A stretch of 62,947 nt of DNA, filler included, from Choristocarpus tenellus KU-1152 (lineage: Eukaryota > Protista > Phaeophyceae), in assembly GCA_964200185.2 (NCBI GenBank). It is 12 parts of 12 records of this genome, joined end to end, with 100 filler letters (N's around TTAATTAATTAA, not from the genome) between each part and the next. Parts side by side here need not be neighbours in the genome. Positions count along the whole stretch, not along the records: positions 21,638 to 39,282 come from CAXNAD020000642.1; 11 more parts are not named here. One strand, written 5' to 3'. Below are positions 20,596 to 40,387 of the stretch, in pieces; position 1 is the first letter of the stretch; every line of letters begins with the position of its first letter. A model generated the notes under the pieces. That model was given only the letters and a program-made list of their open reading frames with translations. It made no database searches and was not told the DNA's origin. A program made the translations under genes and the position numbers.

Positions 20596-22085
20596 GTATA
20601 CGGAAGACCTAGCTATCTGTACACGTGTAGTGTGGGGTCTGTACGCTACTTAATCCTTCAGAGTGGGGGCAAAAGGAAATTTTATGGTGATAATGAAGAC
20701 ATCAAAGGCGATGGCCTTACCAGACAGTTTAACAGTATGTTTAAGTCTGAACCAACCATTTCCTCATTATTGCTCGATATACTAACAAATCGACTACAGG
20801 ACGAAGAAAAGGGGGGGAGTGTCTGACGATAGCTGTAAATATCCACTGCTTCGTATCTGGCAATAGCTACTTACGGCTTTTCTCTGTTTTGATTCATGAT
20901 TCATCCAAGACCTGATCTTGTGGTGTGTCTGCTGTTGCTTAGAAATGGTAAAGCATCATCATCAACACTCCTGATGTGGATATGACTGTAAAGACAACAG
21001 CTTGGAGTAAGTCAGTGATCACAAGCATTTCACGTGGTGCATCACTACTTTGTACCTCTGGAATACCCCGTATGTCTTTTGGCTGTGTGCTCATCGTTTT
21101 GTTCTGGTCCCTATCCTCTGCTTGGGTCTGCTGAGAGCTTTCTATTACTGCCTGCCTACTACTACTGTGCGTAGGAAGTGCATTGCTTCTATTGAACTAC
21201 CATTCCCTTTCCTTCTGCCAACCCCGGAGGAGGAGGAGGAGGTGTCTCGGTTGGTCACATATTCCTGCTCTGGTTTCATTGTATCTTGTGTGACAAGATA
21301 GCTACAGCCTCCAGATCCACACACAACCCTGCAGTAGTATACACTCGGACAACCTGGCTGAAACAGATTGTGCGCATTAAGACGAGATGATGGAAGCTTG
21401 ATGTTGCGCCACATGGTCATCCAACCGCACATAAATCATACCAACACTTGTCTTTCTCCTACGGTGCAACCACTTGGTAAGGCCCAAAGTATCTGGGGGG
21501 GGGGGTGGCGGCTGTCCATTTGGGGTCAATCTTTTCANNNNNNNNNNNNNNNNNNNNNNNNNNNNNNNNNNNNNNNNNNNNTTAATTAATTAANNNNNNN
21601 NNNNNNNNNNNNNNNNNNNNNNNNNNNNNNNNNNNNNCATAAATAATTTACCGTAACTGTCCGATAGAGTTGGAAGAGTCTAATCGAACAGAAGTAACAC
21701 ACACAGCACAGAGAATACAAACACAATAATTGCACCAGGGTTTATTAATACATACAGTATATTCAATACATACATACATATTTTGTTTCCCTGTAGTACG
21801 AAGGGTTTAGATGACTAAGTTAGAAACAATGTCACAGCAAGTCGACGGATAGAATTTGTTGCCGTAGTCTACACATTCACCCATTCCAGTAAAGAAAAAC
21901 CGACCCTACATCAGAACAAGAAGAAACGCCAACTAATATTATTCGGTTTCCTATCATTTTTTTATGTACTCACCAACGTCCACCCCATCTATTGCTGCAA
22001 AATAATTAAATTCTGCCCACAACACATCAAAGTAGCATTCCGCAAATCTAAACCCACGGAAAAGAGGAGAATATCTGACAGCTTA

Positions 22086-24260
22086 CATTCACACTCCTCC
22101 AGCACCACTAGGAGGAGAGACACAGAGTGATGGAGGCTGTTCCTGGTTAGCAGGGGATCTGTGCCAGGGTGCAAAGATGGCACAGGAGATCCACCAGCTA
22201 GCAGACTCTGAGGGCGACTTTGCCAGGGTAGGAGGAGGGCTGTATGCCAGGGAGGAGAGAGTAGGAGAAGCTCACTCCACCAGCTATCTGTCAGTCACGA
22301 TGCTCCATCACCACCATGACAAGGGCAGGAACGTCCTTTGCAGAGAACTTTCCACGCATAAACGATCTTGTGATCATTCAAGGCTGGAGGCTAATCTTGT
22401 TGGTGGAAGGTATAACAGTATCAATCACCCCATATGTCAAAATCTTTCTGAATCTCACTGTACAATCATTTCAAAGATCTCCAGGTGTATTGCTAAAAGT
22501 TCAGTCTATCGAAACAAAGGGTGTGGAAGAAGGAGTGCCTCCAGCAAAGGTATCCATGAGTGTCACAGAGCTAAACCTTCCAGAGAAGGGTCTTTGTTGC
22601 AGCGTCATCCATGATTCCATGCCTTTCCTAGTCAAGGGGCACTACTTTTGTTCCGGAATCTCATCCATTCACTATGCCAATGCGTTCTTATCTTGAATTA
22701 AGGACCTCCACCTGTTTGTTCAGTTGTGGTGAGTACACACCAACATTTCTTCGTTATCACTCCGGTAAACACTAGAGTACATTGTTAATAAACTTTTATC
22801 AAGAGGACCTGAGCCCCCAACTGCTTGCAGTGTGCTTGTACATAGGAGTACAAAAGTTAAGATAGGAGGTGGGTTTGCGGGCGAGAAGGTTACCAAGCAG
22901 AACCGTGCTGTTGGAGAAGTAGGGACCACTACAGTAGTAATTGCACCTTGCAAAAGTTGTTCGGATAGGCAGCGGGAAGACTGAGTCCAGTATACACACT
23001 ACATACATAGCAGTACTTTGTGTGCCTCTTTGATGTGTAAATCAACATTATAACTCTTTGAGCTGAACAGCAATATGCATTAAGAATTGACCTGACAATT
23101 GAGGAGATTGGGCACCAGTGGAGGCAAGCAATTTCTTCACGCATTACGCATGTTCACGTCACCCGGTGAATTCTCAGTTGAAGTAATTAATTCTACCTAC
23201 AACCGGCTTGTTAGTGGACATGGCAACATTCCCCACAAATGGTAATACTCGGCTCAATGATGCATCAAAATCACTTTCTCAAGGTACAGTCATCAACTGA
23301 GCAACAAAAACAGGAAAACATCTCAATCCTACACAGAAATCGGTGCAGCACTGATGCAGAGGGTGCCAAAAGGGTGGGTGACTATACTCTTGCAGCAGGA
23401 TATATGTCTATATAAATATAGATGTGTGCGTGAGAGAGAGAGGGGTAGAAAAAGGACTGCCACAAAAAATAAAAATACCTGTATTATGAGTAAGAGTAAT
23501 TAGTACTTCAAAGTAGAAGAGAGGAAGATAAGTAAAAAGCATAGAGGTTCCTTTCACCTCAACAAATCTCAGCCCCTAAAAAAAATGAAAAAATATGAAC
23601 ACCCTACATCAGGGAAGTCATTAAAAAATTGATGGAGTCGAAAAAACTTGATATGGCAAGGTGCAGGCTATTGTGTGTATAGGGAGGGAAAATATAACTT
23701 CACAGTCAACACAACCCAAGAGTAATTACCACTTCCCACAAGGGATTTCCTACTCCGCTCGTGATCAAAGACCAACAAACTAACAATAACCTCTTGAAGC
23801 ACTGTCCATCAAGCAGAGCACAGCACCTCACACAAACTACACCCAAACGCATGCGGATAGAATTGCATGAGGGTGTGGAAAGGTTGACTCCACCTTCACT
23901 AAACTGATTCAAACGCTTCACAAACGCCGCTCCCCCAACACTTCTCCTGTTCCATTCAAGGAATTGATGTACATGTAAATTTATACAGCTACAACAACAG
24001 TAGTGCACGTCCAGCATACTCAGTTGAACTAAATCTATGAACAATAACACTTTATCGTGTGAGTGTTGTCGGCAGTGGGGACTTCATACCCCAAATTTAC
24101 GACCCCCAAGCTGACAACTACTGTACTTCTACTAAGATGAGCTGCAAAAGGATCAACACAAAACCGTTCACTGTACAACTGCAACCTCCTCCTTACATCC
24201 AACCCTCGGCAGCAAGCCATCCCATACTTACGTAGCAGTTTCGGTGAAAGGGAGAGGCAT
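22086..24260 (-). CDS. Possible multi-exon hypothetical gene (weak)
   Basis: Phase-compatible candidate exons give MPLPFTETAT-ERFCVDPFAAHLSRSTVVVSLGVVNLG-RSVGGAAFVKRLNQFSEGG..., plus a further open segment SWWSELLLLSPPW...VVLEECE|gtaagc. No recognisable domain. Confidence 0.25.
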
Positions 24261-25054
24261 CGCAGTTAATCATTATTCTCACTGTAGTTACTAGAGAAAC
24301 TCAGTCTTGGAGGATTTCCCTCAATGCAGTTGAGTTTAGTATAAATCTATATAGAGCAGGTCAGATACCTTGCTTTGTGACTATAGTCTCACAGGCACAA
24401 AGTCCAATCCAAGAAAGTTATCCTCGACGAATACAGGCCTCCCAGATTGGGCATTGTACAAGTTACCAGAGTAACTTGTCAGGACAATGGAAAACATGAC
24501 AGTGCAATATGAACCAATCTGTATCATATTGGACTCTACCTGCAAAGTACAAGTGGGGGACTCAGGACTTGAAAACCAAAGCACTATCAAAAGAAAATGT
24601 GGCAGGAAGAGCATAATCCTCATTCCCAGGCATAAAACACAGTAAAAATTTGTAAACACAATAGTCATCAACAAGGCATTCAAGACAAGTCAAACATGTA
24701 CTAACCACATGAAACCAGCCGCTCCAAATCAGACCCTCATTCTCCCACCCCCTTGCAGGCAGTCACCATCCCACTCCATACCCATGTCACATTAGTGACA
24801 AGAGCATTCTTCCCTCCCAGGCATAATAGCATAAGAGGCAACAAGCCCATCACAGAGAATCAAACCAATGTCTGCTGATCACCCGATTCCCTCCCACCCT
24901 CCAATGCATACAGTACTTGAGGGCAGAGGTCTTAAGGTGTCAAATAAGCATAGCAATGGTGTAGACAGAGGCCAGAACCAGAGTCACCCCAAAACAATAA
25001 ACAAACAGGGAAAAGTGAAATGAATAGAAGACCAAGCCAGTGACACTCTTTCAT

Positions 25055-28000
25055 TCACGCATAGTCATACTGCTGCCTAAAGTCCACCTCTGCAAGACCC
25101 TCATCCTCTTCCAAGATCGCAACCTCCTCCCTCCTCTCCACTCTTCCTGACACTTGGTTGATGCTGTCAGCCCTTCCACCGCCTCCCAGGCCTGTTGAAT
25201 ACCCATAGAAATGTTGTTGATCTCCATCTCCACCAACCATCCCCTCTCCTACGTTTGCATCGGCCCCAGACGTAGCTACAACCCCAGTCGGAAGGGAGTA
25301 AGGCCGATCCGTCAACGCTGTCGTCAGTGCCTCTTCCACGATCTGAAAAAAATGCAAAAAGAAAGACAAACACAAGTGTTTATCACCATTCAGACGTGTT
25401 ACAATATTCTGCATGTTTGATTGCTTCAAGGTGGAAGAAAATATCGATCTGAGAGACAACAAAATGAGACTCAGATCAGCAAACCTTTGTGAGGCACTCT
25501 TCCCCATCACAGCAAGTGCACTGACTCACACCTGACAAGTGGGGTTACCAACCAACAACACCAGTTGGGCGGGCACCTAACCCACTACAGGTCACGAGGG
25601 CCCTCGATGGTTCTGCCATAAAACAAGGGCGTTTGTTTCCATAAACCTATAAAAACCCTAGGTGCGCCTAAAGATTTCTCCAGCTTTTTTCCATTTTTCA
25701 AAACAAGTTTGTCGCCTAGATCATCACTTAGATCAATTCATTTATAACACATGCAAACGTAATGATTAGGATCCGAGAAAAGCATCTTGGTGTTGAAAAG
25801 ACGAAATACTGATGCTCATATTGTTGTCAACATAGTCAAGACTCCTACCTGCAAGCATGAGGACGGAGACAGCCCAGAAGAGAGTGGGGATGACGATGCT
25901 GACCCTGCAAGCTTCCCCTGTTGGTGCTGCTCTTGCTGTGGCTGAAGTGGAGGGTTTGCACCCATGTTCCGTGAGAGGGTACGAAGGAATGCCGGTGGTG
26001 CTGCAGGTGAGAAGAGCATTGAGTTCCTCAGTGCTTCCAACAGTTGACCCTTGCAAATGCTTGTTGCAATTGATCTGTCATATTTCGGGGAGAGGTGGAC
26101 TCAGGGAGCTAAGAGAGAACAATTCTTACTCTCTTTCTCTTCTGCAAATTCAAAAAAAGGTATTATAACATATGATACTGTGTTTCAAAAGCACACAGTG
26201 CATATATATATATATATATATATCATTACTATTTTCTAGAGATACGTACAATCGCTGAGAAAAAACAATTGATGAGAACAAGTTCTCATGACTGCTTGAT
26301 ACAGGTGCGAAAACCTAATGCATATATATGAGCAGTTTTGTCAACAGAATACACTTTTCTAAGACATACACACAGACAAGTTTGGAAGTGTTCAAAATAG
26401 ATCAGAGGTCTATAGTAGATATGAGAAGCACAGCTTTTGAACCCACAGCAAACAGTTACACCAGTTATTTTTGCATAGCACAGCGGAGAGCCATGTACGT
26501 CTTTCCATGCACATATTCTTTGCATATGTTTGCTGGCCCTAGAATATGTGCACATAATGGAGATTCAGAGAAACTTCTTGGGGTATTCCAGCTGGCCAGT
26601 AAGTACGAATGTATGGGATAATTACTATTTTTCTTTAAATGCCTGTGTGTAGGTCTAAATATTAAGAAAGATGGATGCTTGTACTAAAGAGTGAGTGTGA
26701 TGATACTGCAGGCATGACCAACCAGACTGGAACCTCAGAAAATGAAATAGGGAAGATGTAGATGAAACACCTTGGTATCTGAAAAATATCTCTCGGAGCA
26801 CCCATGACCATAGATATCTGTAAGGTATAGTCCCTCCAAGAGGTGTCCAATTTCCCCCCTCAAGGTCAGTGGAAGAGTCAAAGGAGTATGAAGAAGGTGA
26901 GACATTGTATGCCAAGTCAAATCAAAGGTTGCAATGGTCTTTGTTTGGGGACACGCACAGAGCTCCAATCATCTGGAGTTCGTTTGCTTACATGGGCTAA
27001 GGGGATGTACAACAGTTCTGATCTACTCATGGTGTACATGGAGCACAAATTCATCATCGTACGCTGGAGTGTCAACGAGCATTTGATTTTCACAGAGGTT
27101 GATCCGGCTATGGCATGCTCGTCCTGATCCCGAGTACACTCAATACTTACGAGCCAAGTAGATAATTGGATTCGAGCACTTCCAAATTACAAGCCTTGCT
27201 AGCCCTCCAAGATATTACACCCAACAGCCCCATTGTAGAACCGGCTACTTTACGATTCACAGTCATGCTCGCAGTTTTCATTGCCAAGTCACTACCATTG
27301 GTTCACACAATTTATCTTATTGCCGATATGACATGTACATCTCACCCAATAGACTTTAGAGTGTTGCAGGAGCACTCATAGAGCATTAGCTCTCCACCTG
27401 ACGTGAGTACCGGGTCCCCACCAGCTCCCAGTAAGACGCGTTTTGCCACGAAGGCGGCATCCGTCACTACTCCCTGCTCATCCACTGATACCTATATGAC
27501 CAGGTCCCAGAAAGAGGTGGATTTGGGATCGTTCGGCTGGTCAAAGGCATATCATCACACTAAACCATCCGCATGCAGGCGAAAATAACCATAGTTCGCG
27601 TTGTACATGATTGGATCACGACTGTGTCTACTAAAAACAAAACAGCACTTCACAAGCCTACGTCTCACGACCGAAATAATCGTGTGATTATTGATTAGAC
27701 GTAAATGTTGCAACCACGAGATTTTACCGGAGACATTCATGCAACGAGTCAACCGCAGCATGCAAATGTGCCAATTATAACATGGATACAAACGGTATTG
27801 CCCAGTCTAGAAAAACTCAAGAGAGATGAGAGAGATGCAATATGTGATGTAAACCAATATCGCTCGCACAACCCTACAGAGCATGGGTTACCTGTATGTC
27901 ACACACACAACCACAACCACTTCCTTTACCGCAGCCGTGCCCTTGACCGTGTCGCAACAGGACCTCCCTCCCTCGCTGAGCCCAAGGGGTGTCAGGGATG

Positions 28001-28083
28001 GCCACGGGAGTTGACAACAGGTTTTGGGGGTTTCTTGAATGCATCTTAAACACATCCCTCGTCAATGCCAGCAGGAACTTCAT
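25055..28083 (-). CDS. Divergent IscU/NifU-N/SufU-like Fe-S scaffold protein, 283 aa; exons 28083-27892, 27491-27346, 26074-25849, 25342-25055
   Basis: All introns are GT-AG with consistent phases (0, 2, 0). GCGCVCDIQ-VSVDEQGVVTDAAF, CNTLKSIG-SIATSICKGQLLEAL and SCLQ-IVEEALTTAL align without gaps to IscU ACGDVMKLQIKVNDEGIIEDARF, CGSAIASSSLVTEWVKGKSLDEA and HCSILAEDAIKAAI (E. coli sequence recalled from memory). Start codon inferred. Confidence 0.85.
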
Positions 28084-29089
28084 ACTGCACCACGAAGATG
28101 ACCCCTTGCTGTCTTGCTGTCTCCCACCCAGCACCTGCTATCCCCTCAACTACCCCTCTGTGTCGTTCAAACTGGAATGATAACTTTGTTTTTTGGTTGG
28201 TCAGTGACATCCTCAAATTTTGATGTGTAAGAAAAAATGCACACACGTCATACAACCATGTGACGTAGGACGACGTGTCGTATTGCTCCGTTCAAAACAC
28301 CTTTACAATCTTTTTTGTTCTCTCAACCACACACTAACATATCTATATTATTTGCAGATACGTATGACGTATGAAAGCCGGTATTAAATATAGAACATCA
28401 AGCTTCAAAACCCTCCGAAGGTGTAGAAACCCTTCAACTATGTTGCTTTTTGGTCTACTGAATGGTTTTATTTTCTTTGGATGTATACGAGTCAAGTTTT
28501 CACAGAAACATATATATACAATAAATATCTCTCCTTGTCGCAGTCTGAACGTATTTTAATGTACGACAAATCCTGTGTGTATAGCGCCTCATCCTCCACA
28601 AGTTGAGATTATCCACGAAGGAAGAAACATCATGTAACGAATACACCATAATAACCACAGAAAGCACTATAACATCAGATACACCAACTTGTGTGTTAAC
28701 AATTAATTGACCAGAAAACAACAAACTTTAGTGCTAAGTTGCGTGAAACCCTGTTTATCCTTCTTCTGTTTGGAAGACAACCTCGTTTACCTGTTGATAT
28801 TATTGGTTCGTCTAAGGTGATTCAGATGCCATTACTCAACAGTTTGTCCAAAAATGGACATAGTAAGGTGTACCCTGTTTTATGTATATTATGGGATTGG
28901 ATTGAGTCCATGTGATGTGTTTATAATATGAATAATGTTTGGGGTTTGGTATTGCAATTAAACTTCTTTGACATAACCGTTGACTTACGTCCAAGGCACA
29001 GATAATAATAAGACAAGCAATAAGAAGACACCCCACAAGGTCACAAGGTCGCTTTTCTTTTCAACCATGTGATCATATTCAGCAATGGG

Positions 29090-29745
29090 GAATCGTGTGA
29101 GGCTCCCAGAGCTTTCTTCTCTCTTCTTCCATGCTGACACAAACAGTAGTCTAAATCTGCGCAGAGTTTACTCAGTAAACCAGAGATAATTTACAGCTTG
29201 CATTTGAGTTGGCAGACCGTAACCTCCACGAACACGTTAAGAGTAAGGAACGTGCCAACCAACGCCTCGTGTTCCTTATTTTCGTACCTGGTGATCAAGT
29301 TCTAGCTAGTCCATTGCCATATGAGAGTACTGATGGTCCGAATCCGAAATTACTTCACCCTTTTAGGGGTCCATATGAAGTACATTCTAAGCTATCACCC
29401 GTGGTGTACAGGGTAGTATTACCTGGAAATCCACGTCTATTTTTCGTTCATCTGTGTAGAATGAAAACTACCACCCTCAAGTCCAACCTCCCACACCAGA
29501 TTTGAATGAACTGGATTATTGTTTTCTGGGGAAACAATAGCCATTACCCGATATAGATCATCAAAATCTCTCAAACTGTTATTGGCCAACACACTATTGA
29601 TAGCATTGTTGGACATAGACCTGGTCCTGGTCGTCATTCGCCCACAAATGTTATCTATCTTTCTCTTTGTGGCTATGGACCGCTTGTGACCTTTACAAAA
29701 GAGCAGAACATATCCCACAATACCGTGAAATGATTGCAGCCTAAT
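29090..29745 (+). mobile_element. Chromovirus (Ty3/Gypsy) integrase C-terminal remnant: GPY/F motif and chromodomain
   Basis: PGDQVL...PKLLHPFRGPYEVHSKLSPVVYRV...VHLCRMK, then HTIDSIVGHR...GYGP / RAEHIPQYREMIAA with frameshifts. Confidence 0.85.
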
Positions 29746-29869
29746 GTGCAGTAAAATAATTGGATAACCAGTAAATTATCGTTCTACACAACTTTGACTT
29801 GAGAATTCGTATTTACTGATACCATATTCCTTTGCATAGTCTGTATATATCACATAATGTAACCTATTA

Positions 29870-30930
29870 TTAGTATCATGCCCTCTGACATTTTGCAGAT
29901 GTGTCAGGGGGGAAACCAATGAGAACTATTATTCACATGTCAGTGTAAGCCCTAAAGAAATCAAATATGTCACAAATGTGAAAAACAGCGACCCATTTGC
30001 TATTTTACTACTATTTATACTACTGCCTTCCTGCGCCTCCGATCTACCTATACCTGTGCCTCTGGGTGAGGAGCTAGGGATGCATCGCAAGAATCCAACA
30101 AACCCCTCCCTGCCCAACTCCCTGGTGACTCCAGCTTAAAAAGCATGACACGTCTAGACAGTGCCACTTGTGTAATTATTGATACAATTTGGCGTAGCCG
30201 GGATTTAACCGCTCCTTTCCTGCTATATCCTCCAGTTCCTCTCCCCCCCATGTGTGTAGCCAGCTCATTCAGGAAGCATTCCACTTGCTTGCCGAGGTGC
30301 CCAAAACTTTCCTCTGCGAAGGTTTTGAGGTTAGAACTACGAGGATCAAAAGAGTCCTCATAGTGGGTGCGCTTTCGCGCCTCAGCTGCAGCAGCAGCTA
30401 CACCATCGCTGGTGGATGAGTGTGTAAGATGGGAGGTGGCCTGCACTTCTGCAAATGTAGCATCAAGTAGAAGTCCTTTGTCCCGGTAGGGAGCTGTTCA
30501 AGCGTCTGCCAGTGCCCCTGCATGGACAACTAGATCCATGTAGAGATTTCTGTCTACAGTGAAGGGACTGCCGTCCTCAGTAGTGCAAGGGATGCCCATT
30601 TCCTTGCATACTTGGCTTAGGCGTTTCACCATGGGGGTATGCTGTCGAACCTGTCCTCCTGCCCTGGGGCAGGTATGGGCATGTCTGGTGTCAACATTTT
30701 GCCTCATGCACCCCACCACTGGGCACCTGTTTGAGAGAGCCTCCTCTCTCCCTAGGGATCTGCTGGTTGTAAGCTTGAATACCAAAGGGGGGATCTGGCA
30801 TGCTGGCTCCAGGGGTTGCGTTGAGGCCCATGCGTTTTCCCCCTTTCCACACTGACTCCAGTGGCGTGCTAGAGCTAATGAGGACCTCTCCTTCCCCTGG
30901 TGCACTTCACTAGGTAGGCCGGCTAATTGT
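29870..30930 (-). mobile_element. 5'-truncated RLE-type (CRE-like) non-LTR retrotransposon: zinc knuckle, restriction-like endonuclease and 3' UTR
   Basis: CPVVGC...HAHTC, VRQH, E.GSPF...MDLVV...LLLDATF, EARKRTHY, FAEESFGHLG; one in-frame stop at ~30498; terminal hairpin and tail. Confidence 0.82.
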
Positions 30931-30949
30931 GTCAGGAGTGTAACCTATC

Positions 30950-33400
30950 GTTTCAGTAAAGAGATCATTGTATGTATGTGTGGTACAGATTCTGACCAAT
31001 TTTTACTGTTTGTATGTTTGTTTTAAGACTTAAGTTTTTAGGCCCAGATCTCGTGTTACCCATATATTATCATATTACCCATATATCATAATCCTTTACA
31101 AAGGTTGACCATCCAGTTTAGACAAATCGTTTGTATGCCATTTTGTCATGAAGGGGTATAGTCTATCGTTTTGTGAAGAGATTAGATATCTGGTAATAGA
31201 TGTCAGTTAAATTGTCCCTGACCAGCTGTGACTTGATATCTCGTGTTTACTAGGTTTATAAATCCTAGCAAATAGACCATATGTATACTGAGTATATGTT
31301 GGTGGCATTTAGATAAATTAATAATTGCAATTAATTTATCTATCAACTCTCCTCGTTTGCATGAGTGGACACATGTGGTGGTGAAGAGACCATATCACCA
31401 GCACATTAGCAACCGTGTGTTCGAGGTGGCTGTTCATTACATTATGTCACTTTTTCATTAATTTGATTTATGGATTATCATGAAATGACTAACTCCATCA
31501 AACACAAAGATTCAAGTCTACCACTAGGTAAGTGATGGAGGCTTCAGGTGAATAATATTTTTATTGTTTTTCGAGTGGGATAGTCTCCCTGGGAGGATGT
31601 AAAGACGGTACAGTCACCTTGTATTGTTTGGAGAGTTGAGCCACCAATATTGCCCGTTTGCGTTGTCCACTTGGAATATTGTAGTCCTCTTGAGTAATAT
31701 TCCAATCGTTGTCAGAATGCGGGGAAGGAGAATGGGAGCAAATATCGTATATTTAATCTCATCGTTTGCTATGTTGATTTTTGGTCATATAACACGTGCT
31801 TGTATTTTCGTGCATCAGAGTGTTGATCAAAATAATCGTGTTACACTGGTGTAGCAACGTCAGATGACAAACGCTTGCCAAACAGTTTATTGACATCGTA
31901 TAATGTTTGCTCCTTCTATCCCCATTCTATCCACTGTTTATACAAGATACAAGAGACCTACATGCTGGGCACATATACCTTTCGCCTCGTATTCAGGCTG
32001 ACCGCATTGCTGATCACATGCCACCAGACCTTGACCATGAGCTTGATGCGATACGGACCGCAGTCATCACCGTCACTCATATTTAGGCTGACTGATATGC
32101 TGATCCTATCCTCTCAGACCTCGTAACCTTGATTGGTATGCTGACCACATGCCATTAATCTTAAGGCTCATGATATCCTGATCAGATATTCATTGATGCC
32201 TTGTTATATACTACGCTTCATTTGTATTAATGGAGTAGTGTAATGTAATGGTACAATTGTATATCAACAGTCAAACATGTTTCCCATTTGGTCCCAGAGT
32301 TCACTTTTTGGTTGACCTTGAATCATGCTTACATGGCTTCAAGGCCGATCAGAAGGGGGTGTGACGGGGAAGGCAGGTTTGTCAGTTGTTATATCGTTAT
32401 TGCCGTAAATCACATATCGTCATACCGATTGAGGTTCTTTTTGAGAACTTCGGTTCCACTGTGAGGAGGATCTCGGAGGGATAGATTTCCGTCTCGTGTC
32501 TCTTCATGACCACGTTTTTTTCCAAAGACGGATCTCCCATCTCTGAAAGGTTTCTTTTCAGAAACTCATGCGAACTATGATCGTCCCCACTTCCCCAGTT
32601 CCCCACATTTTCTTGCAAGTCCTTTCAGTCTTTCACTTGTCAAACCTTATCCTCTCGGTTACGGTTCGTCTTGGTTCGTCTAGTCTGTGTTGCCTAGTAA
32701 TTCTCTTCGCCACCCTTACCTGAGTGAACCACGTCACCACAGAATCACACTTTATATTGATCATAAATAAAATGTTCTAACATGGTAGAGTCTAAGGTCA
32801 TGATTACTCAAAATGATTAGGTCCACAAGTTGACCATGTGCACAACCAAGAAACATGACCCAGTCGATGGTTAAGTTCATGTCCATCAATTCTGTGCGAA
32901 ATAGGACAATCTTAAGGTGTACCCTTTGTTGTATATATGAGATCATACCACTGGATTGAGTCGATGTGATGCAAGTACATCCAGATTATATATGGGGTTT
33001 GGTATTGGAGTTAAATTACTCTCACATAGTCGTTGACTTACGTATCATACAAATAATAATTAAACAAAAGTTTAACAAACAGGTTCGCGTGAGGCCTCAC
33101 TTCTTGTTATCTTCACTACTAATCAAGTAGCAATACTTTCCAAGGTTAATTGACCAAATTCTCAACATGAACAAAGGCATAATATACAACTAACTTGGGA
33201 TATGACTGAGATTATTGTTATCGATCGTTTCAACATGGGTGGTCGAATGGTCAACCCCTGTTATGTTTTTGATAAAATAGTAGTGGACATGGTAACTATG
33301 TAGGTCAATGAAAAGTTCTGATAAAATTCGATATAAGTTCTGGCTACCAAAATACAACACACAACAAGACACCCTCACCACTCACTTCATCCCTATTCGT
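30950..33400 (-). mobile_element. Highly decayed Gypsy pol-like remnants (RT, RNase H and integrase zinc-finger traces)
   Basis: Fragmentary motifs only (FARIINLV, VNDYVRV); 32915-33070 resembles 28865-29020. No intact frame. Confidence 0.35.
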
Positions 33401-33459
33401 TCCAGAAATAATCAAATATTCCATCTAAGCAGTTTGTTGGACATAGATTACATATAATT

Positions 33460-33815
33460 TATTATTATGCCCTTTGATATTTTGAAGATTTGTCAGGGGG
33501 GAAACCAATGAAAACTATATATATATGTCGTTATAAGCCCTAAAGAAATAAAATATCTTAAAGGTAAGAACACTATAAAACGAAACCACTAACAGTTACT
33601 TCACCACCATCAAATATTTTATTATTATGCCCTCTGACATTTTGCAGATGTGTCAGGGGGGAAACCAATGAAAACTATATATATACATGTCAAATATTGT
33701 TCTACTGTCTTCCTTAGCTTCGCATCTACCTACTCCTGTGCCTCGGCGGGGGGAGCTAGGGAAGCATCCCAAGAATCCAACAGACCCCTCCGTGCCCATA
33801 TATTATTATCCCCTC
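33460..33815 (-). mobile_element. Stacked short 3' fragments of the CRE-like LINE (similar stack at 50760-51075)
   Basis: Repeated ATTATTATGCCCT(C/T)TGA..TTT...GTCAGGGGGGAAACCAATGAAAACTAT, plus the ORF end WARRGLLDSWDASLAPPAEAQE. Confidence 0.8.
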
Positions 33816-34654
33816 TCATACCACATTGTAGTTTTTTTATTTCTAACGTATGACATATATGTTGAACGAATAAGTTCAGATCAAAATTGAAGATCCTTTT
33901 ACAAGGAACAAGATAAATAATGAATATTATTATGTACTGGAGGTGTGTGAGGGAAAAACGAATGAAAAACGATGATGAACCAACCACCCTATTATGATGA
34001 ATATCATTCTTTCGTATTGTAATATACTACAATTTGGTGAAGGAGAACAGAAAATTGAAGACATTTGTGGATACAAATATTTCTAATTTTTCGACTTTAA
34101 GATTCTCTGTCTTATGAACAAAAAATATGTATTTTCGGAACTTATCACTTTCAATGATAGAACAAGAATATAACAAGTTCTTGGTGAAAACATTCGATAC
34201 CCTTACCATTTCACACCTATAAGCGTTGAAGTCTGTGAATCTTGAGTCTGTCTGTAATTTGAACAAGGTGGTGCAGCAGGGGGATGCGACAACTCCTCCA
34301 TCGATACTGAGTGGGGCAATAAGCTATTTGCTTCTGCTCGCATCAGGTCCCATGTCTGGAATGACGTGTGTCTCTTTTTGCTGGGGAACGCCTGGTCCAA
34401 CTTGTGTGCGAGTCTTCCAAATATAGTGCAAACCAGTCGGTGAGAAACCATCAGCAGAAAGGGAAGACGCCATTGACCTCATACAGTATTCAGTGCTTCT
34501 TTTTTTCATTGCCCCTCACACTCAACGTTTTCGATGTTTCGACAACGATCGTAATTCAAACATATACTTTTGGAGGGAGAGTCAAGACATAGGGCAATCA
34601 AAGGAGAAGGCCCACCACAGAATTTGAGAGGGAGAGGAACACACCACAGCTCTC

Positions 34655-37600
34655 ATGGTGGCTACGATTCCCCTCAGGGTTTGTGTGAACAAGAGCGACC
34701 AAGGCTCGCATCAAACAGATGAACCACTGCAGTGTGACGACTCGATCTCTTCGCCTGAGAATTGTTTCGAAGGAAACGACGAGCGGTCATTATTTGAGGA
34801 GGACAAAATTTCGAGATACCGTTCGATTCATGTCCAACGTCCGAAAGGGCTATCTAGGATGTTAAAAAACTGTGGCAAATCCCACTTCAATCCTGACGAA
34901 GTCAATGCCGACAAGACTCTGGTGGACAAACCCCAGTTTAGAGGAATGTCTGGACACCGAGTTGAGGGCTTAGATTCGGAAGGTTGGAGGTTTCACGGCC
35001 ATCGGGGGCAAGTGAAAGCTCCCCCCCCAGCTGAGAACAGGGAGGTGGAGGGAATTGTAGGACAGGGGTCCAAGCCACGGTCCCATACTTCTGATGTGGG
35101 AGGGATGCCCATCAGTCGTCAGGGAGAGGGAGAGGATGATGGATCGGATCAGAATATTGGCACGTCTCGAGGCTCATCCCAGCCCTTAGATATGGGCTAC
35201 TTTCCTGATGCTGTGAACGCTAATCAAGGTGTCAGGGAAACTTGGGAGAGTGAATGTGGCATGGCGCGAGACAAGGACCAGTCCATGGACCAGGAACGAA
35301 CACATCCCTTGAAGAGACCACGGTTGTGTTTATTGTCTGGGACCAGTAGATCAGGAGAACAGGGAGACACATGCAGGTCTGCTGTTAAAGGCAGCGACAG
35401 TCTGAGGTCTCCCTGCCCGCTGGCTAAGGTCTTCAAGCGCATAGCATGGGTGGAGGGAGGCATGTCTTACTTGCAAGTCACCCCTGAGTACCTAGACCAA
35501 CTGGCAACAGGAGCAGCTTTGGAGGAGAAGGAGGATGAGGAGGGGGAGGGGGAAGGGAATGGGGATGCGATGGCAAAAGACTACATGTCTAAATTTAACG
35601 TCTATAAGTCTAAGGCTCAGGCTGGGTTGTCGTTGGTGCTCAGACCGCATCCATTGCCTCCATCTCAGCTGTGTGTTTGTTCATCCCTTACACACTCTCC
35701 ACACAAGCAGAGTCCGCCTACTGGGGGAGGGGGAATTGAAGGCAGCAGTTGCGCGAGTAATGGTGGTGGCATGGAGACAGGGTCAAGATCTACTGATGTG
35801 ACTTTTGGGTGTAAAGTAGTGCCTGATGGACAGGAGAAAGAAGGTGAGCAAAGTCACCTTTTCTTGAAGAAGAAAAGGAAGGCTGTGGTTGAGGGAGTAT
35901 CAGTGGGAGGTGGGGAGTGGGAAGAGGTGATGGTAAGAGGGACAAAAACGTCAGCTTCTACTTCAACGAGAGAGGATCGAATGACATCGATTGGGGGGGA
36001 GGCAGACACTGAACCTTCCGTTCCCTTGAAGAAGAAGAAGGTCCTGAGCAGGGGCGGGAGATCATCAAGTGGCCAGGTGGGGACAGCAGGAGTGCAGGAA
36101 GGGGAAGGGGAAGGGGCACGGGGAGAACCAAACCTGAGTGTCAACTCATCTTCAACCTGTTTGACAAGCTGCTCTCCCCATGATCCAATGGAGAGAATCA
36201 GCAAACCATCAACACTACTGGATCAGAGTTGTAGCCGCCCCAGCTACAGTGGTTCATCCCGTGACTGTGTCATCAATGGCAGCAGTTGCCCTGAAGCAGC
36301 AGCGTCCTTGTTGTCCATGACCACTAAATTTGGGGTGACTCCAGAGGTAGCAGGGAGGATTGATGTGAAGGTGGACACTGGGGGACATAGTGTGTCAGTT
36401 GGAGAGTCGCCTGGATTTACCACACAAAATGAGACCAAGTCCCAAAGTGATCACTCAGGTGTCCCCGACCTAGGTTGCCCTGTTGACCCCAGCACCTTTG
36501 TGGCATCATCTCTAGATGAGGAAGAGCAGCAAGAAGGGTCGGTGTTAGAAAAGGACAAGGGGAAGATGGTTACTCCTGGACACCAGGTATATGTCGGATC
36601 AGCAATCCCTTTTGCAAATCAACGGCCCTCAATGGGAGCTTCTCCTTCACACCTGCCTCCCAAGGCTTCTTCACATTCACCTCTTTATGTGGCCCTCAAC
36701 CTCCCACTTTCATTGAAAGATGTATCAGGAAGAAGTTCAAGAGCATCAGGAAGCTCACCCGTCAAGTTTGTGGCAAAGGAAACTACACAGTCCACTCAAA
36801 AATGTGCAAGTGCTGCCCTTGCTTCCCACCATAGTAAGATGGGCTCAATTTCTTCTTCACTTTGGAATACCTCCTTGGGCAATGGAGAGGAGAGGACAAC
36901 CCTTCAAAGCCCACAATGGCCACAGTGCTCAATGTCAGCATCGGCACTGTTAGCCGCAGGGTCTGTTCCCATGTGTGGCATTCCCACGGGAATCATTGCC
37001 TCCAGAGTCTCTCCACATACAGTCAATGCTGCTGATGCTGGTGCCGTGATGACATCAAGGTCATTGTCAAAAGACCGTCAGCCATCACCATTGTCAGCAT
37101 CAACATCATCTGGCTCAGGTAGGCCATCTATAGGCCACCAAACCGGTAGGGCACCTCCTCCTTCCAGCAATACTACAACTACTACAAACAGGTCAAAGGT
37201 TTCGCCGGCCTATATTGCTGCAACTCCTGAAGTGGATAGGAATCGAAAGTCCAGGTACACTGCCAAGCCCGTGATGGAGCGAAATTTTCCAGCAGCCGGT
37301 CTGTTGTCAAAGCCGTTGCCCCTGAATGGAGCAAAGAGTTTACCATCGGTGTCAAGGCTAGCAACAGCCCCAGCAGCAGCTGCGACGAGATCAGCTCCTG
37401 TTGACTCGCCATCACCACAGTTGATTGCTGTGGGTGGACCACGGGTTAAAGCGTCCAAGAAGCACGCTCACTCATTATCTCACGTAAGGGCAAAGGAGGC
37501 AGTTGTGTTATCACCATTCCAAGAAAGTACATCCATTCCCTTGTCACCATCTCGAGAACTGCATCCTCAGCCAACCATAGATGGAACCGCAGACTTGGCA

Positions 37601-38596
37601 AGGAGATCACTGGTGCTAGCAGCGGTACCACCGCCGGTTTCTACACGCGACAAGTGGAAGTGTTCAGCTGCCAGAGGTCCCCGTCCAATAAACAGGTGTT
37701 CGGTGTTGCAACCTGGGATGGGTGGAGGGGAAGACCGCCCATACTTGCAACTACAGCCACGTTATTCTCGACCGATGGTTGGGGCAACATCCGGTGCCAG
37801 GCCATCCCCGTCCAGTGTGACATTACCTTTGGCTCCTCAACCCCCGCCAGCCCAGTCAGTTTTACCTGTCCTTAACGACCATGCCCTTGCGGCAGTACAG
37901 TCTGAGACTGTAGTGCAGTCTCCAGCGCAGGGCACGGTGTCGATGTCTGCACCGTCTTGGAATCGTCATCTGCAGGATCAGGTCTTGCGCACGCCCACAG
38001 CAAAGGCAGCAAGCGCCCCGGGGTTGTCTGCATCGCTGTTCCAGTCTCTGGGAATTCCAATGCCTGCGCCCTCAACTGGTGCTAACCACCTGCCTTCGAA
38101 AGAGTCAGGACTGTCAACACCGAGGGCAAAGGTTAGGGACCCTAGGAGGAAGGGAAGTCAACGACAGCGATCCGCGTACTCCCCAAGACCCCATGTACGT
38201 GCGGACAAGGATGGACTGTGTGCTGTGGAGAGGAGGGTTAGAAGAGACCAGTCACGGCCATCTGTTCCTGGGGCAGATTTTGGGAGAGTGGACGCCGTAG
38301 GGGGAGTAAGACCGAAGCCAATTGCGATGGCGTTGGGGGGGTGCCCTGTTCTCCAGGACAAGCCTGCAAAGATCAAGGTTGCAGTAGATGGAGGGGAAGG
38401 GCGGGTGCAAGTATTGGGGCGTGAGGGAGGTTTGGAGGGCATAGAAGGGCGAGTCGTTGCACCTGATGTGACAACTGTTGTGGAGGGTGTGTTTGGCACT
38501 GTAAAGGTGTACCTTCCTAGGACTACCTCTGTGGCAAAGTCTACTTCTGCGAGAGTGCAGTTGCTTGGGGGCTGTGAAGCTGATTTGGAGCGGAAG
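34655..38596 (+). CDS. Very large coding exon (1314 codons) of a Ser/Gly/Pro-rich, probably disordered hypothetical protein; the rest of the gene is not in the contig
   Basis: 3.9-kb open frame with higher GC than its flanks, ending CGGAAG|gtgagc before low-complexity intron sequence; basic clusters KKKRK and KKKK; one RDPR motif. Confidence 0.8.
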
Positions 38597-40387
38597 GTGA
38601 GCAACCCCCCCCCTCCCCCCCCCCCCTGTAGGTTTTTTTTTTTTTTCTCCTTTTTAAAATTTTTTGAATTTTTCTGTTCTCTTCATCTTTTATTTTTGAC
38701 TGTTCATACAATCATAGTTTTTTTTTCTTTAATTCCTACGCTTGTGGTTGATTCTTTGAAAATATAATAATTAAAAGTACACTGCATCATTAAAGCTCTT
38801 GAGCAACAAGAACAAATTTATCATCGATCGGACAGTAAGTTTCGAAATCCTTTTTTTTGTCATCTTTTTTTTTTTACTCGCATGGTAATGTTAGTGCAGT
38901 AGTAATTAATAGTAGATACTCTTAACTTTTTTTTTTTCAATTGTTTTTTTTTTCTTTCCTAATTTGCGGTTTCGATTAATCCCTCGGACGCAAGAATCTA
39001 ATAGTTGTGCCGTTGTTGGGCTGACATTGCTGAGAGACGGAGCACAATTTTTTTAAATTATAGTATCTTTTTTCCCACACCCAATGGGTTAAGTAAGTGG
39101 TTGGTACCAGAACTATTGTACTCTTAGGGATGTGACTATTTTGCCCGAAGTTACACGGACTCTACCGATTTCTACCAAGGATCAGACTTTGCTGATGACT
39201 AAAGGTTGTGACTCGAAGTATATGGGGGGGGGGGGGGGGGGGGGGGGGTCTACCCGGGGGGTTTTTTTGGGGGCGGGAACGGNNNNNNNNNNNNNNNNNN
39301 NNNNNNNNNNNNNNNNNNNNNNNNNNTTAATTAATTAANNNNNNNNNNNNNNNNNNNNNNNNNNNNNNNNNNNNNNNNNNNNACCAAGCAATCTCGCAGG
39401 GTTTATCACCTTTATCCTCTTTGATGATTTTGGGGATACTTTAACACTGTACACTTCTCTTCCATAGTAGCATAGATGACATAGATCCCGCTGTTGATCT
39501 GTGCCCACTCCAATCAATTCCGATATTCTTTCCAAGATAAAAACCGGCATGGTCTCGGCTTGACCGTATATGCTCCCCTTTGGTGTGCACCCTGAACGGA
39601 CTACACACCTTTTCTACCACGGTAACGGAGATGAAACAGATCCTGCTGTTGATGTATGGCGAAATTCGACTGCAGCACACTTCAAGCTTCTAGTTCCCAC
39701 TACCACAGATACTTCCTCAACCTAGCTTACCTTGATGGCTGGAGGTGATATAGGTCGCGAGGACAGGAACACTGATCTAGAGAAGCGTCAAAAACAGGTA
39801 GGAATGCTTTCCTCACCCATGTTACCTCACCATTGCCGATACTTCACATCCTGCGCATTATGATGTGAGTTCTTCGCAAGTCATGATCGACCACTGTAAT
39901 TATATTACATCCACTGAATTCACTTGGCCATTTCTATATATTAATTCATCCCATCTCACATAAACCCCTATTGCAGTCCCCGCATCACATAAATGTAATT
40001 CCACCTCTTGGCCATCTCTACAACACAACACTTCAATATTCCTTCTACATGCAAAGCATATCCACCATGTCAAGGTCCTTCCCACCTCCATTGCACTCCA
40101 TTTACAGAATGGGTACTATCCATTTCAACTACATTTCATCGATCTCATATCATCATGTTTCCCTCGCTGATTTTGCACCATCCATCTTATCGTACCGAAT
40201 CAACAATGTAAGTTTCAATCGCATCCCATCCATCCCTTACGGACATTCCACCACACTCCCCACAACACACCACATTTCAATAATATAATTTTTCACTTAT
40301 TCACCATCTACACCGATACACAACTACATGTGCCTTCTGTACAACTTTCTCTTCCTCCATATTGCAATGCACAATGAGTAAATACTC

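Follow-up and report, generated by a model that had tools for sequence, protein, structure and literature searches.

A putative distant IscU relative with six invariant cysteines in brown and yellow-green algae

IscU is among the most conserved proteins of Fe-S cluster biogenesis, and three of its features, Asp39, His105, and the LPPVK motif, make it a transient scaffold. LPPVK is the site bound by the Hsp70 chaperones (HscA/Ssq1), and replacement of Asp39 stabilises the bound cluster; the variants D39A, D40A/H106A, and H106C are known to trap or stabilise it. A second described protein of the same fold is SufU, which has no LPPVK, carries an insertion of 18-21 amino acids between Cys2 and Cys3, binds Zn, and relays sulfur. 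Motifs of the CxC and CGC types are also found in thiolate proteins that bind Zn, Cu, or Cd. Here we describe a gene of Choristocarpus tenellus whose product is predicted to share this fold, with a different set of residues at the cluster site.

The gene is located on the minus strand, at 28083..25055, of the window (the whole stretch of DNA analysed, 62,947 nucleotides with filler included), and it consists of four exons separated by three GT..AG introns, encoding a product of 283 amino acids. Transcript support comes from X3, a run that carries no RNA label but has the character of a transcriptome from this organism. The parts of the gene are as follows.

27892-28083, minus strand: exon 1, coding for residues 1-64, start codon at 28083-28081 (translation; X3 contig)
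27492-27891, minus strand: intron 1, 400 nt, GT..AG (X3 joint 27488>27889)
27346-27491, minus strand: exon 2, residues 65-112 and 2 nt of codon 113
26075-27345, minus strand: intron 2, 1271 nt, GT..AG, phase 2 (X3 joint 26074>27346)
25849-26074, minus strand: exon 3, the third base of codon 113 followed by residues 114-188
25343-25848, minus strand: intron 3, 506 nt, GT..AG (X3 joint 25342>25849)
25055-25342, minus strand: coding part of exon 4, residues 189-283 and the TGA stop codon (25057-25055)
24900-25054, minus strand: start of the 3' UTR (X3 contig 8)

All three junctions are matched exactly by spliced X3 contigs, in which the introns are skipped (for intron 1, a cut three places on, 27491>27892, fits equally), and contig depth is 376-993 over the exons versus 0-13 over the introns. 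Contig 11, which continues into exon 2, spans 27889-28091 and ends 8 nt upstream of the ATG, and positions 1540-1982 of contig 8 (2238 nt) map to 24900-25342, the transcript running approximately 1.5 kb further left of 24900. The start codon is fixed by an in-frame stop upstream (28140-28138), with no ATG between the two. The product has the same sequence as NCBI CAM9206673.1, recorded as 'unnamed protein product [Choristocarpus tenellus]', in which the exon translations are placed at residues 1-64, 65-112, 114-188, and 189-283, the codon split between exons 2 and 3 (GG and A) being that of G113. The gene is thus real, expressed, nuclear, and spliced as modelled, and the four-exon, 283-residue reading proposed in the initial annotation is upheld. 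A (TA)n tract lies within intron 2, at 26191-26234.

With exon 2 as a query, a family of homologues (n = 8 full-length) was recovered from Phaeophyceae, Xanthophyceae, and one metagenome eukaryote, with members from Tribonema, Ectocarpales, and Scytosiphon included. These proteins are annotated only as 'unnamed' or 'hypothetical', with no name in any source, and a literature search (IscU in brown algae, Ectocarpus, D39C) returned no papers on the family. Pattern scans, of limited reach, across 185,579 prokaryote genomes and JGI metagenome contigs revealed no confirmed relative. Judging from these searches, this appears to be a small, uncharacterised family so far seen only in brown and yellow-green algae, plus the metagenome eukaryote, in agreement with the uncharacterised stramenopile subfamily originally suggested. 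An ordinary mitochondrial ISU presumably exists alongside it in Choristocarpus.

The family is not recognised by the standard models. Pfam returned no match at E<=10, NifU_N (PF01592) included, for the four exons, for P0005, P0008, P0007, P0001, and P0004, or for the eight full-length members, CAM9206673.1 included. The TIGR01999 iscU equivalog cut-off of 192.4 bits was missed by CAM9206673.1 (13.7 bits, E 0.051) and by P0008 (13.8 bits), P0017 and P0009 giving no match to this model, and phmmer searches of PDB with exon 2 or exon 3 singly produced chance matches only. The family profile (alignment A1), when compared with PDB, gave 16 matches in two collinear segments, all of them IscU/ISCU/NifU-like (E 1e-3 to 1e-2), and hhalign of the same profile against Escherichia coli IscU extended over 88 columns with a probability of 93% and an E of 3.4e-7. 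As the AF2 model of CAM9206673.1 itself was poor (mean pLDDT 49) and its Foldseek match weak (IscU first, E 0.02), folds were compared using an AF2 model of a shorter homologue, P0017, for which the input alignment was limited to family sequences and the core pLDDT was 74-86. The best approximately 45 Foldseek matches of this model in PDB are almost all IscU, SufU, or NifU-like (probability 1.0, TM by target 0.60-0.66, rmsd 1.8-3.3); one of them is CsdE, of the same fold. VIA-align against 48,161 representative chains placed IscU at Z 10.1, 9.4, and 8.6, SufU at 8.2 and 7.9, and SufE/CsdE at 5.4-6.5. The ESM Atlas model of CAM9206673.1 matches a NifU_N cluster (TM 0.75 by that row), and its nearest Atlas folds are all NifU_N. 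Present among the fold and sequence matches are PDB entries 2kqk, 7c8o, 7cnv, and 2z7e, which are, respectively, IscU D39A, D40A/H106A, H106C, and the Aquifex IscU with a [2Fe-2S] cluster.

Profile, hhalign, Foldseek, VIA-align, and ESM Atlas results thus all agree with the IscU-like fold of the initial annotation, the Pfam NifU_N search being negative and AF2 with Foldseek positive. The core, approximately residues 45-200, is predicted to have the IscU fold, and the protein is, by these comparisons, a distant IscU relative, with modest support at the sequence level. On the same models and alignments, the family would descend from the IscU/NifU_N scaffold fold and would have left the canonical family. 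The features in which it departs from IscU, or recalls it, are located as follows.

28021-28041, minus strand: codons H15-N21 (H-x3-P-x-N); collinear counterpart in IscU, HYENPRN
27907-27933, minus strand: first Cys loop, codons C51..C57-G-C59 (hhalign; Cys in 8/8 homologues)
27381-27443, minus strand: insert K81-L101, 21 residues before Cys2 relative to IscU (hhalign gap)
27366-27374, minus strand: CxC, codons C104-S-C106 (hhalign; both Cys in 8/8 homologues)
25870-25950, minus strand: Q/S/P-rich low-complexity insert P155-L181, 27 aa, pLDDT <50
25855-25860, minus strand: codons S185-C186 (hhalign; C186 in 8/8 homologues)
25067-25096, minus strand: C-terminal motif L-A-E-V-D-F-R-x-Q-Y, codons L271-Y280 (homologue alignment)

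As originally claimed, C57, C106, and C186 are in register with the IscU cysteines: in hhalign, with HMMER in agreement, they correspond to C37, C63, and C106 of E. coli IscU, and C59 corresponds to D39. The C-G-D motif of IscU reads C-G-C in the exon fragments and in each of the eight homologues of full length, so that the exchange of Asp39 for Cys is a property of the family. Likewise, the position of His105 is occupied by Ser185 in CAM9206673.1 and by Ser, Ala, Thr, or Gly in the homologues, and a His before the third Cys was never found in the family alignment. Four further cysteines had been listed as extra ones. Two of these, C51 and C104, lie shortly ahead of the first and second ligand positions and are invariant; the other two, C61 and C120, are each present in only four of the eight homologues. 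The invariant set across the eight full-length homologues is therefore 51, 57, 59, 104, 106, and 186, in the arrangement C-x3-5-C-G-C, C-x-C, C, and by this alignment the conserved site would have six Cys rather than four plus incidental ones. The Cys loops lie within or adjoin low-confidence parts of the AF2 models.

LPPVK is absent from all family members aligned, as had been noted. Its replacement by a Q/S-rich insert does not hold for the family, since the insert P155-L181 is lineage-specific, being present in Choristocarpus and missing from every other homologue (alignments A1 and A2); the segment aligned to LPPVK reads G-A-N-P plus insert in Choristocarpus, L-E-L-A-P-H-Q in Tribonema, and L-G-T-P-R-H in Ectocarpales. 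The insert before Cys2, initially put at about 20 residues, is kept in all homologues and is predicted to form a beta-hairpin extension (strands E62-73 and E91-93 of the P0017 model), and hhalign places approximately 10 extra conserved residues between Cys2 and Cys3 compared to E. coli IscU.

The N-terminus had been described as presequence-like, and this is not supported, because the region is retained from Met1 onwards in every homologue as a conserved segment of the protein, with M1, K2, L4, H15, P19, and N21 invariant (for H15, P19, and N21, as counted over 8-10 homologues). The best local hhalign match of H15-N21 is exactly to IscU residues 10-16, at a non-significant E of 0.28, and the similarity of H-x3-P-x-N to HYENPRN is likewise not significant in a shuffle test (z 1.06); a possible likeness to the IscU N-terminal motif is kept as a lead only. 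Exon 4 encodes the domain's C-terminal helix and, after it, a disordered tail that is acidic and rich in Gly. The acidic tail, as first described, is found across the family, with a length of 40-95 aa (pLDDT <50 in CAM9206673.1), and the low-complexity or disordered share of the protein as a whole is approximately 45%. The alignment of the eight full-length homologues points to a conserved C-terminal motif overlooked in the initial annotation, with its L, E, D, F, R, Q, and Y invariant. One more match involves this exon, between Y203-G226 and E. coli IscU residues 11-34 (BLASTP E 6e-4; z 4.7; 0/1000 shuffles). An internal duplication or circular permutation was considered on this basis and rejected, since the stretch falls within the Gly-rich tail, which varies, and no orthologue conserves it.

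What might such a protein do? With moderate confidence, we favour a metal centre, probably Fe-S, that is ligated by Cys and stably bound, over a scaffold discharged by chaperones. Six thiolates would converge on the IscU cluster pocket, a convergence that we infer solely from the alignment to the IscU ligand positions, and would bind a metal centre firmly, the likeliest candidate being an all-Cys-ligated [2Fe-2S] or [4Fe-4S] cluster. A centre held in this way would therefore make for a stable Fe-S/metal protein, acting as a carrier, store, sensor, or redox partner, and not for a scaffold emptied by HscA/HscB-type chaperones, and the conserved tail motif would be a probable docking peptide for some partner. 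A stable four-Cys Fe-S or Zn protein instead of a transfer scaffold, as the initial annotation had it, is a reasonable inference from the known chemistry of IscU. A more specific version, which we offer tentatively and consider doubtful as a whole, is that of an IscU-derived family confined to ochrophyte algae, namely brown and yellow-green algae and at least one further relative, with no cleavable targeting peptide, a permanent all-Cys Fe-S cluster at the six-Cys site, and a C-terminal docking peptide, possibly extramitochondrial. If true, this would be a new class of Fe-S proteins (sensor, store, or Hsp70-independent donor) that evolved from a scaffold.

Other interpretations must be weighed against this one. 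That the IscU resemblance is due to chance, the protein having some other fold or being largely disordered, is already disfavoured and is very improbable: while exon-by-exon Pfam and PDB searches are empty of real matches, and the low mean pLDDT of CAM9206673.1 and its large low-complexity or disordered share would fit this reading, profile and structure searches yield almost nothing but IscU, which also ranks first, and the ligand Cys line up. A sulfur relay similar to SufU, with structural Zn and with one Cys that would take the persulfide from a desulfurase and pass it on, as an activator or shuttle rather than a cluster holder, we consider unlikely. SufU chains are indeed among the fold matches (the two VIA-align chains and several Foldseek rows), SufE/CsdE, single-Cys sulfur acceptors of the same fold, also match, and the family resembles SufU in having neither LPPVK nor His105 and in carrying insertions relative to IscU. 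However, the matches to IscU are stronger (Z 10.1-8.6 versus 8.2), and the Asp ligand that in SufU gives way to the Cys arriving from the desulfurase is a Cys here. In addition, an algal survey reports only SUFE-type relays for photosynthetic eukaryotes, and thus no SufS/SufU-type partner system is known in these organisms (PMC8003979).

Two further interpretations were considered. In one, the IscU fold is simply reused for a metallochaperone, a metal buffer rich in thiolates, or a thiol-based redox sensor, acting on Cu(I), Zn, or Cd or through reversible disulfides. This would agree with the six invariant Cys and their spacing, and with a distribution limited to two algal classes, CxC being typical of metallothionein-like and Cu-handling proteins; we judge it distinctly unlikely, as the three Fe-S Cys of IscU are kept in exact register and no specific pointer to Cu or Cd is found in the sequence. 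It is also quite improbable that the protein is a working transient scaffold, a second ISU of another compartment or condition, releasing its cluster without Hsp70. Such a scaffold would explain the retention of the IscU fold and of the three canonical ligands, and the N-terminal H-x3-P-x-N resembles (not significantly) an IscU motif near the desulfurase interface, but Asp39, on whose lability cluster release depends, is replaced by an invariant Cys, neither His105 nor LPPVK remains, and the scores are far under the IscU equivalog threshold.

If a stable, Cys-ligated metal centre is the correct reading, this brown-to-yellow-green algal family, which keeps the Cys ligands, adds two Cys, and departs from IscU at exactly Asp39, His105, and LPPVK, would present a natural experiment on the conversion of a scaffold into a stable metal protein. 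It is missing from the inventories of algal Fe-S machinery because it is invisible to Pfam and its members are annotated 'unnamed' or 'hypothetical'.

Overall, the closest described system is the ISC scaffold IscU/ISU1/ISCU (PF01592, TIGR01999), with which the family is predicted to share the alpha+beta fold, the collinear order of elements, Cys ligands 1, 2, and 3 in register, the Cys-bearing C-terminal helix and, possibly, the N-terminal H-x3-P-x-N. It differs in having Cys for Asp39, Ser/Ala/Thr/Gly for His105, and no LPPVK, and in adding two invariant Cys, the 21-aa insert before Cys2, approximately 10 aa between Cys2 and Cys3, and the 40-95 aa acidic disordered tail with its conserved terminal motif. 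The engineered IscU variants D39A, D40A/H106A, and H106C carry changes in the ligand set where the family does, at Asp39 and His105; they are, however, laboratory mutants of true scaffolds, while the changes in the family are natural, conserved, and accompanied by others. With SufU, the Zn-dependent sulfur transferase of the Gram-positive SUF system, the family has in common the fold, the lack of LPPVK and of the His ligand, and the presence of insertions relative to IscU, but SufU keeps the Asp (three Cys plus Asp on Zn) where the family has an invariant Cys, and, as judged from the alignment to E. coli IscU, the main insert of the family would precede Cys2 rather than follow it as in SufU. 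SufU is also a weaker fold match than IscU, its rows standing below those of IscU in Foldseek. SufU is bacterial and is unreported in photosynthetic eukaryotes (PMC8003979). The SufE/CsdE proteins are of a related fold, to which the match is much weaker than to IscU (Z 5.4-6.5), and they possess a single catalytic loop Cys and no multi-Cys site, in contrast to the six invariant Cys of the algal family.

The part of the window analysed here (21638-39282) holds the gene in question as four exons on the minus strand, as follows, with residues numbered on P0011, its 283-aa protein product:

28083..27892, minus strand: exon E1, 64 codons, residues 1-64
27491..27346, minus strand: exon E2, 48 codons and 2 nt, residues 65-112
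26074..25849, minus strand: exon E3, 1 nt and 75 codons, residues 114-188
25342..25055, minus strand: exon E4, 95 codons and the TGA stop, residues 189-283

All three introns (400, 1271, and 506 nt) are bounded by GT..AG, G113 being encoded by a split codon (GG/A), and the start codon within E1 is fixed by the absence of any ATG between 28083 and the in-frame stop upstream (28140-28138). The stretch is present in three public runs, all from one study. One of these, X1, in which a single contig spans the entire region unspliced, probably represents the source assembly. Another, X3, bears no RNA label and behaves as a transcriptome, with a contig depth of 376-993 over the exons versus 0-13 over the introns. 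Its joints, 25342>25849, 26074>27346, and 27488>27889, coincide exactly with the junctions of the model (a cut three places on, 27491>27892, fits the last equally well), all of them reading CT..AC on the plus strand, that is, GT..AG on the minus, and upstream of the ATG the transcript contig extends for 8 nt. The four-exon gene is real, and of this we are practically certain. One X3 contig (contig 8, 2238 nt), whose positions 1540-1982 correspond to window 24900-25342, runs for approximately 1.5 kb past the stop codon on the minus strand (window ~23361-24900), indicating that the 3' UTR is very long or that another transcript overlaps here; only short ORFs with no Pfam match are found in this segment. 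Intron 2 contains a (TA)n microsatellite (26191-26234), passed over as a repeat in read mapping.

A phmmer search with E2 against 1.84 billion representative proteins returned seven real relatives, and a search with one of these retrieved P0011 (CAM9206673.1, 283 aa, "unnamed protein product [Choristocarpus tenellus]"), of which each exon translation is a substring at the expected offset; the 283-aa model of the initial annotation is identical to this deposited one. Choristocarpus tenellus is an early-diverging brown alga, and homologues are found in other Phaeophyceae (Discosporangium, Ascophyllum, Scytosiphon, Ectocarpus, Cladosiphon, and Nemacystus) and in the Xanthophyceae Tribonema minus (KAG5190452.1, "hypothetical protein"; "Uncharacterized protein" in UniRef) and T. 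gayanum. Genomic-contig ORF calls from other brown algae (P0012, P0013, P0002, P0028) read through introns at the same residues, and thus the intron positions are conserved. Two further homologues, of 203 aa, come from JGI metagenomes, their genes being intronless and adjoining a eukaryotic SPT_ssu-like gene. One of them, P0017 (L002:3001-3612, plus strand, also L003:850-1461; no introns), is encoded on a 26.8-kb JGI contig next to such a gene (PF11779), and is 33-47% identical to the brown and yellow-green algal members, its source being clearly different from both. Searches with two family profiles (A1 and A3) added no lineage, pattern scans of prokaryote genomes and metagenome contigs revealed no confirmed family member, and no source gives a functional name for any member.

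An alignment of eight full-length members has 46 invariant columns, including six Cys (51, 57, 59, 104, 106, 186), M1-K2-x-L4, H15, P19, N21, L-x-x-L-R-N, A-P, and a C-terminal motif, L-x-E-x-D-F-R-x-Q-Y, which the initial annotation did not mention. That annotation listed four additional Cys, of which C51 and C104 are indeed invariant, so that the conserved site comprises six Cys, the two extra ones lying four to six residues ahead of ligand 1 and two ahead of ligand 2, while C61 and C120 occur in only four of the eight members. The insert of approximately 20 aa noted ahead of Cys2, with its C-x-C, is likewise conserved (K81-L101) and predicted to form a beta-hairpin, and the acidic tail is present. 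As for the LPPVK motif, it is absent as claimed, but its proposed replacement by a Q/S-rich insert does not hold, as the Q/S/P-rich stretch P155-L181 is, in the family alignments, private to Choristocarpus, its relatives possessing a short linker, and Tribonema still has L-E-L-A-P in this region.

The relationship to IscU is not recognized by standard models: neither the exons nor any family member has a Pfam match at E<=10, and TIGR01999 (iscU) scores 13.7 bits versus a cut-off of 192.4. With P0005, a family homologue, phmmer against the PDB gave only weak matches (E 0.4-2), 11 of 13 being ISCU or IscU, and the A1 profile gave 16, all to IscU, ISCU, or NifU-like proteins, in two collinear segments (E 1e-3 to 1e-2). 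In hhalign, A1 aligns with E. coli IscU over 88 columns (probability 93%, E 3.4e-7), pairing C57 with C37, C106 with C63, and C186 with C106, the register originally proposed, and C59, invariant in the family, with D39, in agreement with the Asp-to-Cys change (C-G-C). The predicted loss of His105 is also borne out, this position being Ser in P0011 and never His in the family. Within exon 4, Y203-G226 (window 25270-25200) also resemble E. coli IscU residues 11-34 (E 6e-4, z 4.7); a second, decayed IscU repeat was rejected, and the resemblance is most likely compositional or due to chance, because it falls within the Gly-rich tail, which is variable, and no orthologue conserves it.

For P0011 itself, AF2 yielded a poor model (mean pLDDT 49), for which IscU nonetheless ranked first. 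The P0017 model drew on family sequences alone, so that IscU sequences did not bias it; pLDDT in its core is 74-86, and the first ~45 Foldseek rows are almost exclusively IscU, SufU, or NifU-like chains (probability 1.0, TM by target 0.60-0.66, rmsd 1.8-3.3 A). In VIA-align against all 48,161 representative chains, this model is closest to IscU (Z 10.1, 9.4, 8.6), followed by SufU (8.2, 7.9), a NifU-like protein (7.4), and SufE/CsdE (5.4-6.5). In the ESM Atlas, an independent model of P0011 has a NifU_N cluster as a match (TM 0.75 by that row), and the Atlas folds nearest the P0017 model are all NifU_N. Overall, P0011 lies outside the curated IscU family, yet is a remote IscU homologue with the IscU fold; homology to this fold is highly probable, and a chance resemblance very improbable.

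The N-terminus, originally described as presequence-like, is basic (in the first 25 residues, 4-6 K+R versus 0-1 D+E), making a targeting role possible, but conservation in every lineage begins at Met1 and covers the first 21 residues. Their H-x3-P-x-N follows the spacing and order of IscU HYENPRN, a likeness not significant for the motif alone (z 1.06; hhalign E 0.28), and together with the conservation from Met1 it argues that these residues belong to the domain. In two Logan ORF calls from other brown-algal contigs (P0013, P0029), the frame is open for 48-77 codons upstream of Met-Lys-Phe-Leu, with hydrophobic stretches, which is relevant to the targeting question. As these extensions are dissimilar to each other and annotated models begin at Met-Lys-Phe-Leu, they are probably artefacts of prokaryote-style ORF calling.

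Elsewhere in the stretch, a GC-richer block (0.50-0.58) contains an uninterrupted 1370-codon ORF (34655-38767, plus strand), with no Pfam family at E<=0.01, whose Ser-, Pro-, and Gly-rich product ends in a poly-Pro and Phe-rich stretch; a large, low-complexity gene with a single exon is a possible interpretation. Two adjacent minus-strand ORFs (30048-30446 and 30498-30905; 132 and 135 aa), with no Pfam match, resemble fragments of a single coding region, which may derive from a repeat or be a broken gene.

As to function, a SufU-like, Zn-dependent sulfur relay appears unlikely: SufU is structurally close, but the relays of photosynthetic eukaryotes are, according to a survey of Fe-S maturation factors in algae, exclusively of the SUFE type and not SufU (PMC8003979). 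A thiolate metal buffer or redox sensor is less likely still, and a working alternative scaffold slightly less so again. From the retained ligand Cys, the Asp-to-Cys change, the loss of His and LPPVK, and the two additional Cys, we infer instead a firmly held, Cys-ligated metal centre in the IscU pocket; by analogy with IscU, a stable centre of some kind is rather probable, and an Fe-S cluster would be its most likely form, a specification to which we give somewhat less than an even chance. The C-terminal conserved peptide, which follows an acidic, disordered linker, resembles a docking motif. As mitochondrial ISU is near-universal, we assume that a canonical ISU is also encoded in the C. tenellus genome. 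In the literature library searched, we found no paper on the six-Cys IscU-fold family, which Fe-S specialists should find moderately to quite interesting and which can be tested at little cost. The cluster of IscU is labile owing to its Asp ligand and becomes trapped when that residue is replaced, and it is discharged by an Hsp70 recruited through LPPVK; the algal protein would not be emptied by chaperones, and the family represents a natural and new version of a fold already known.
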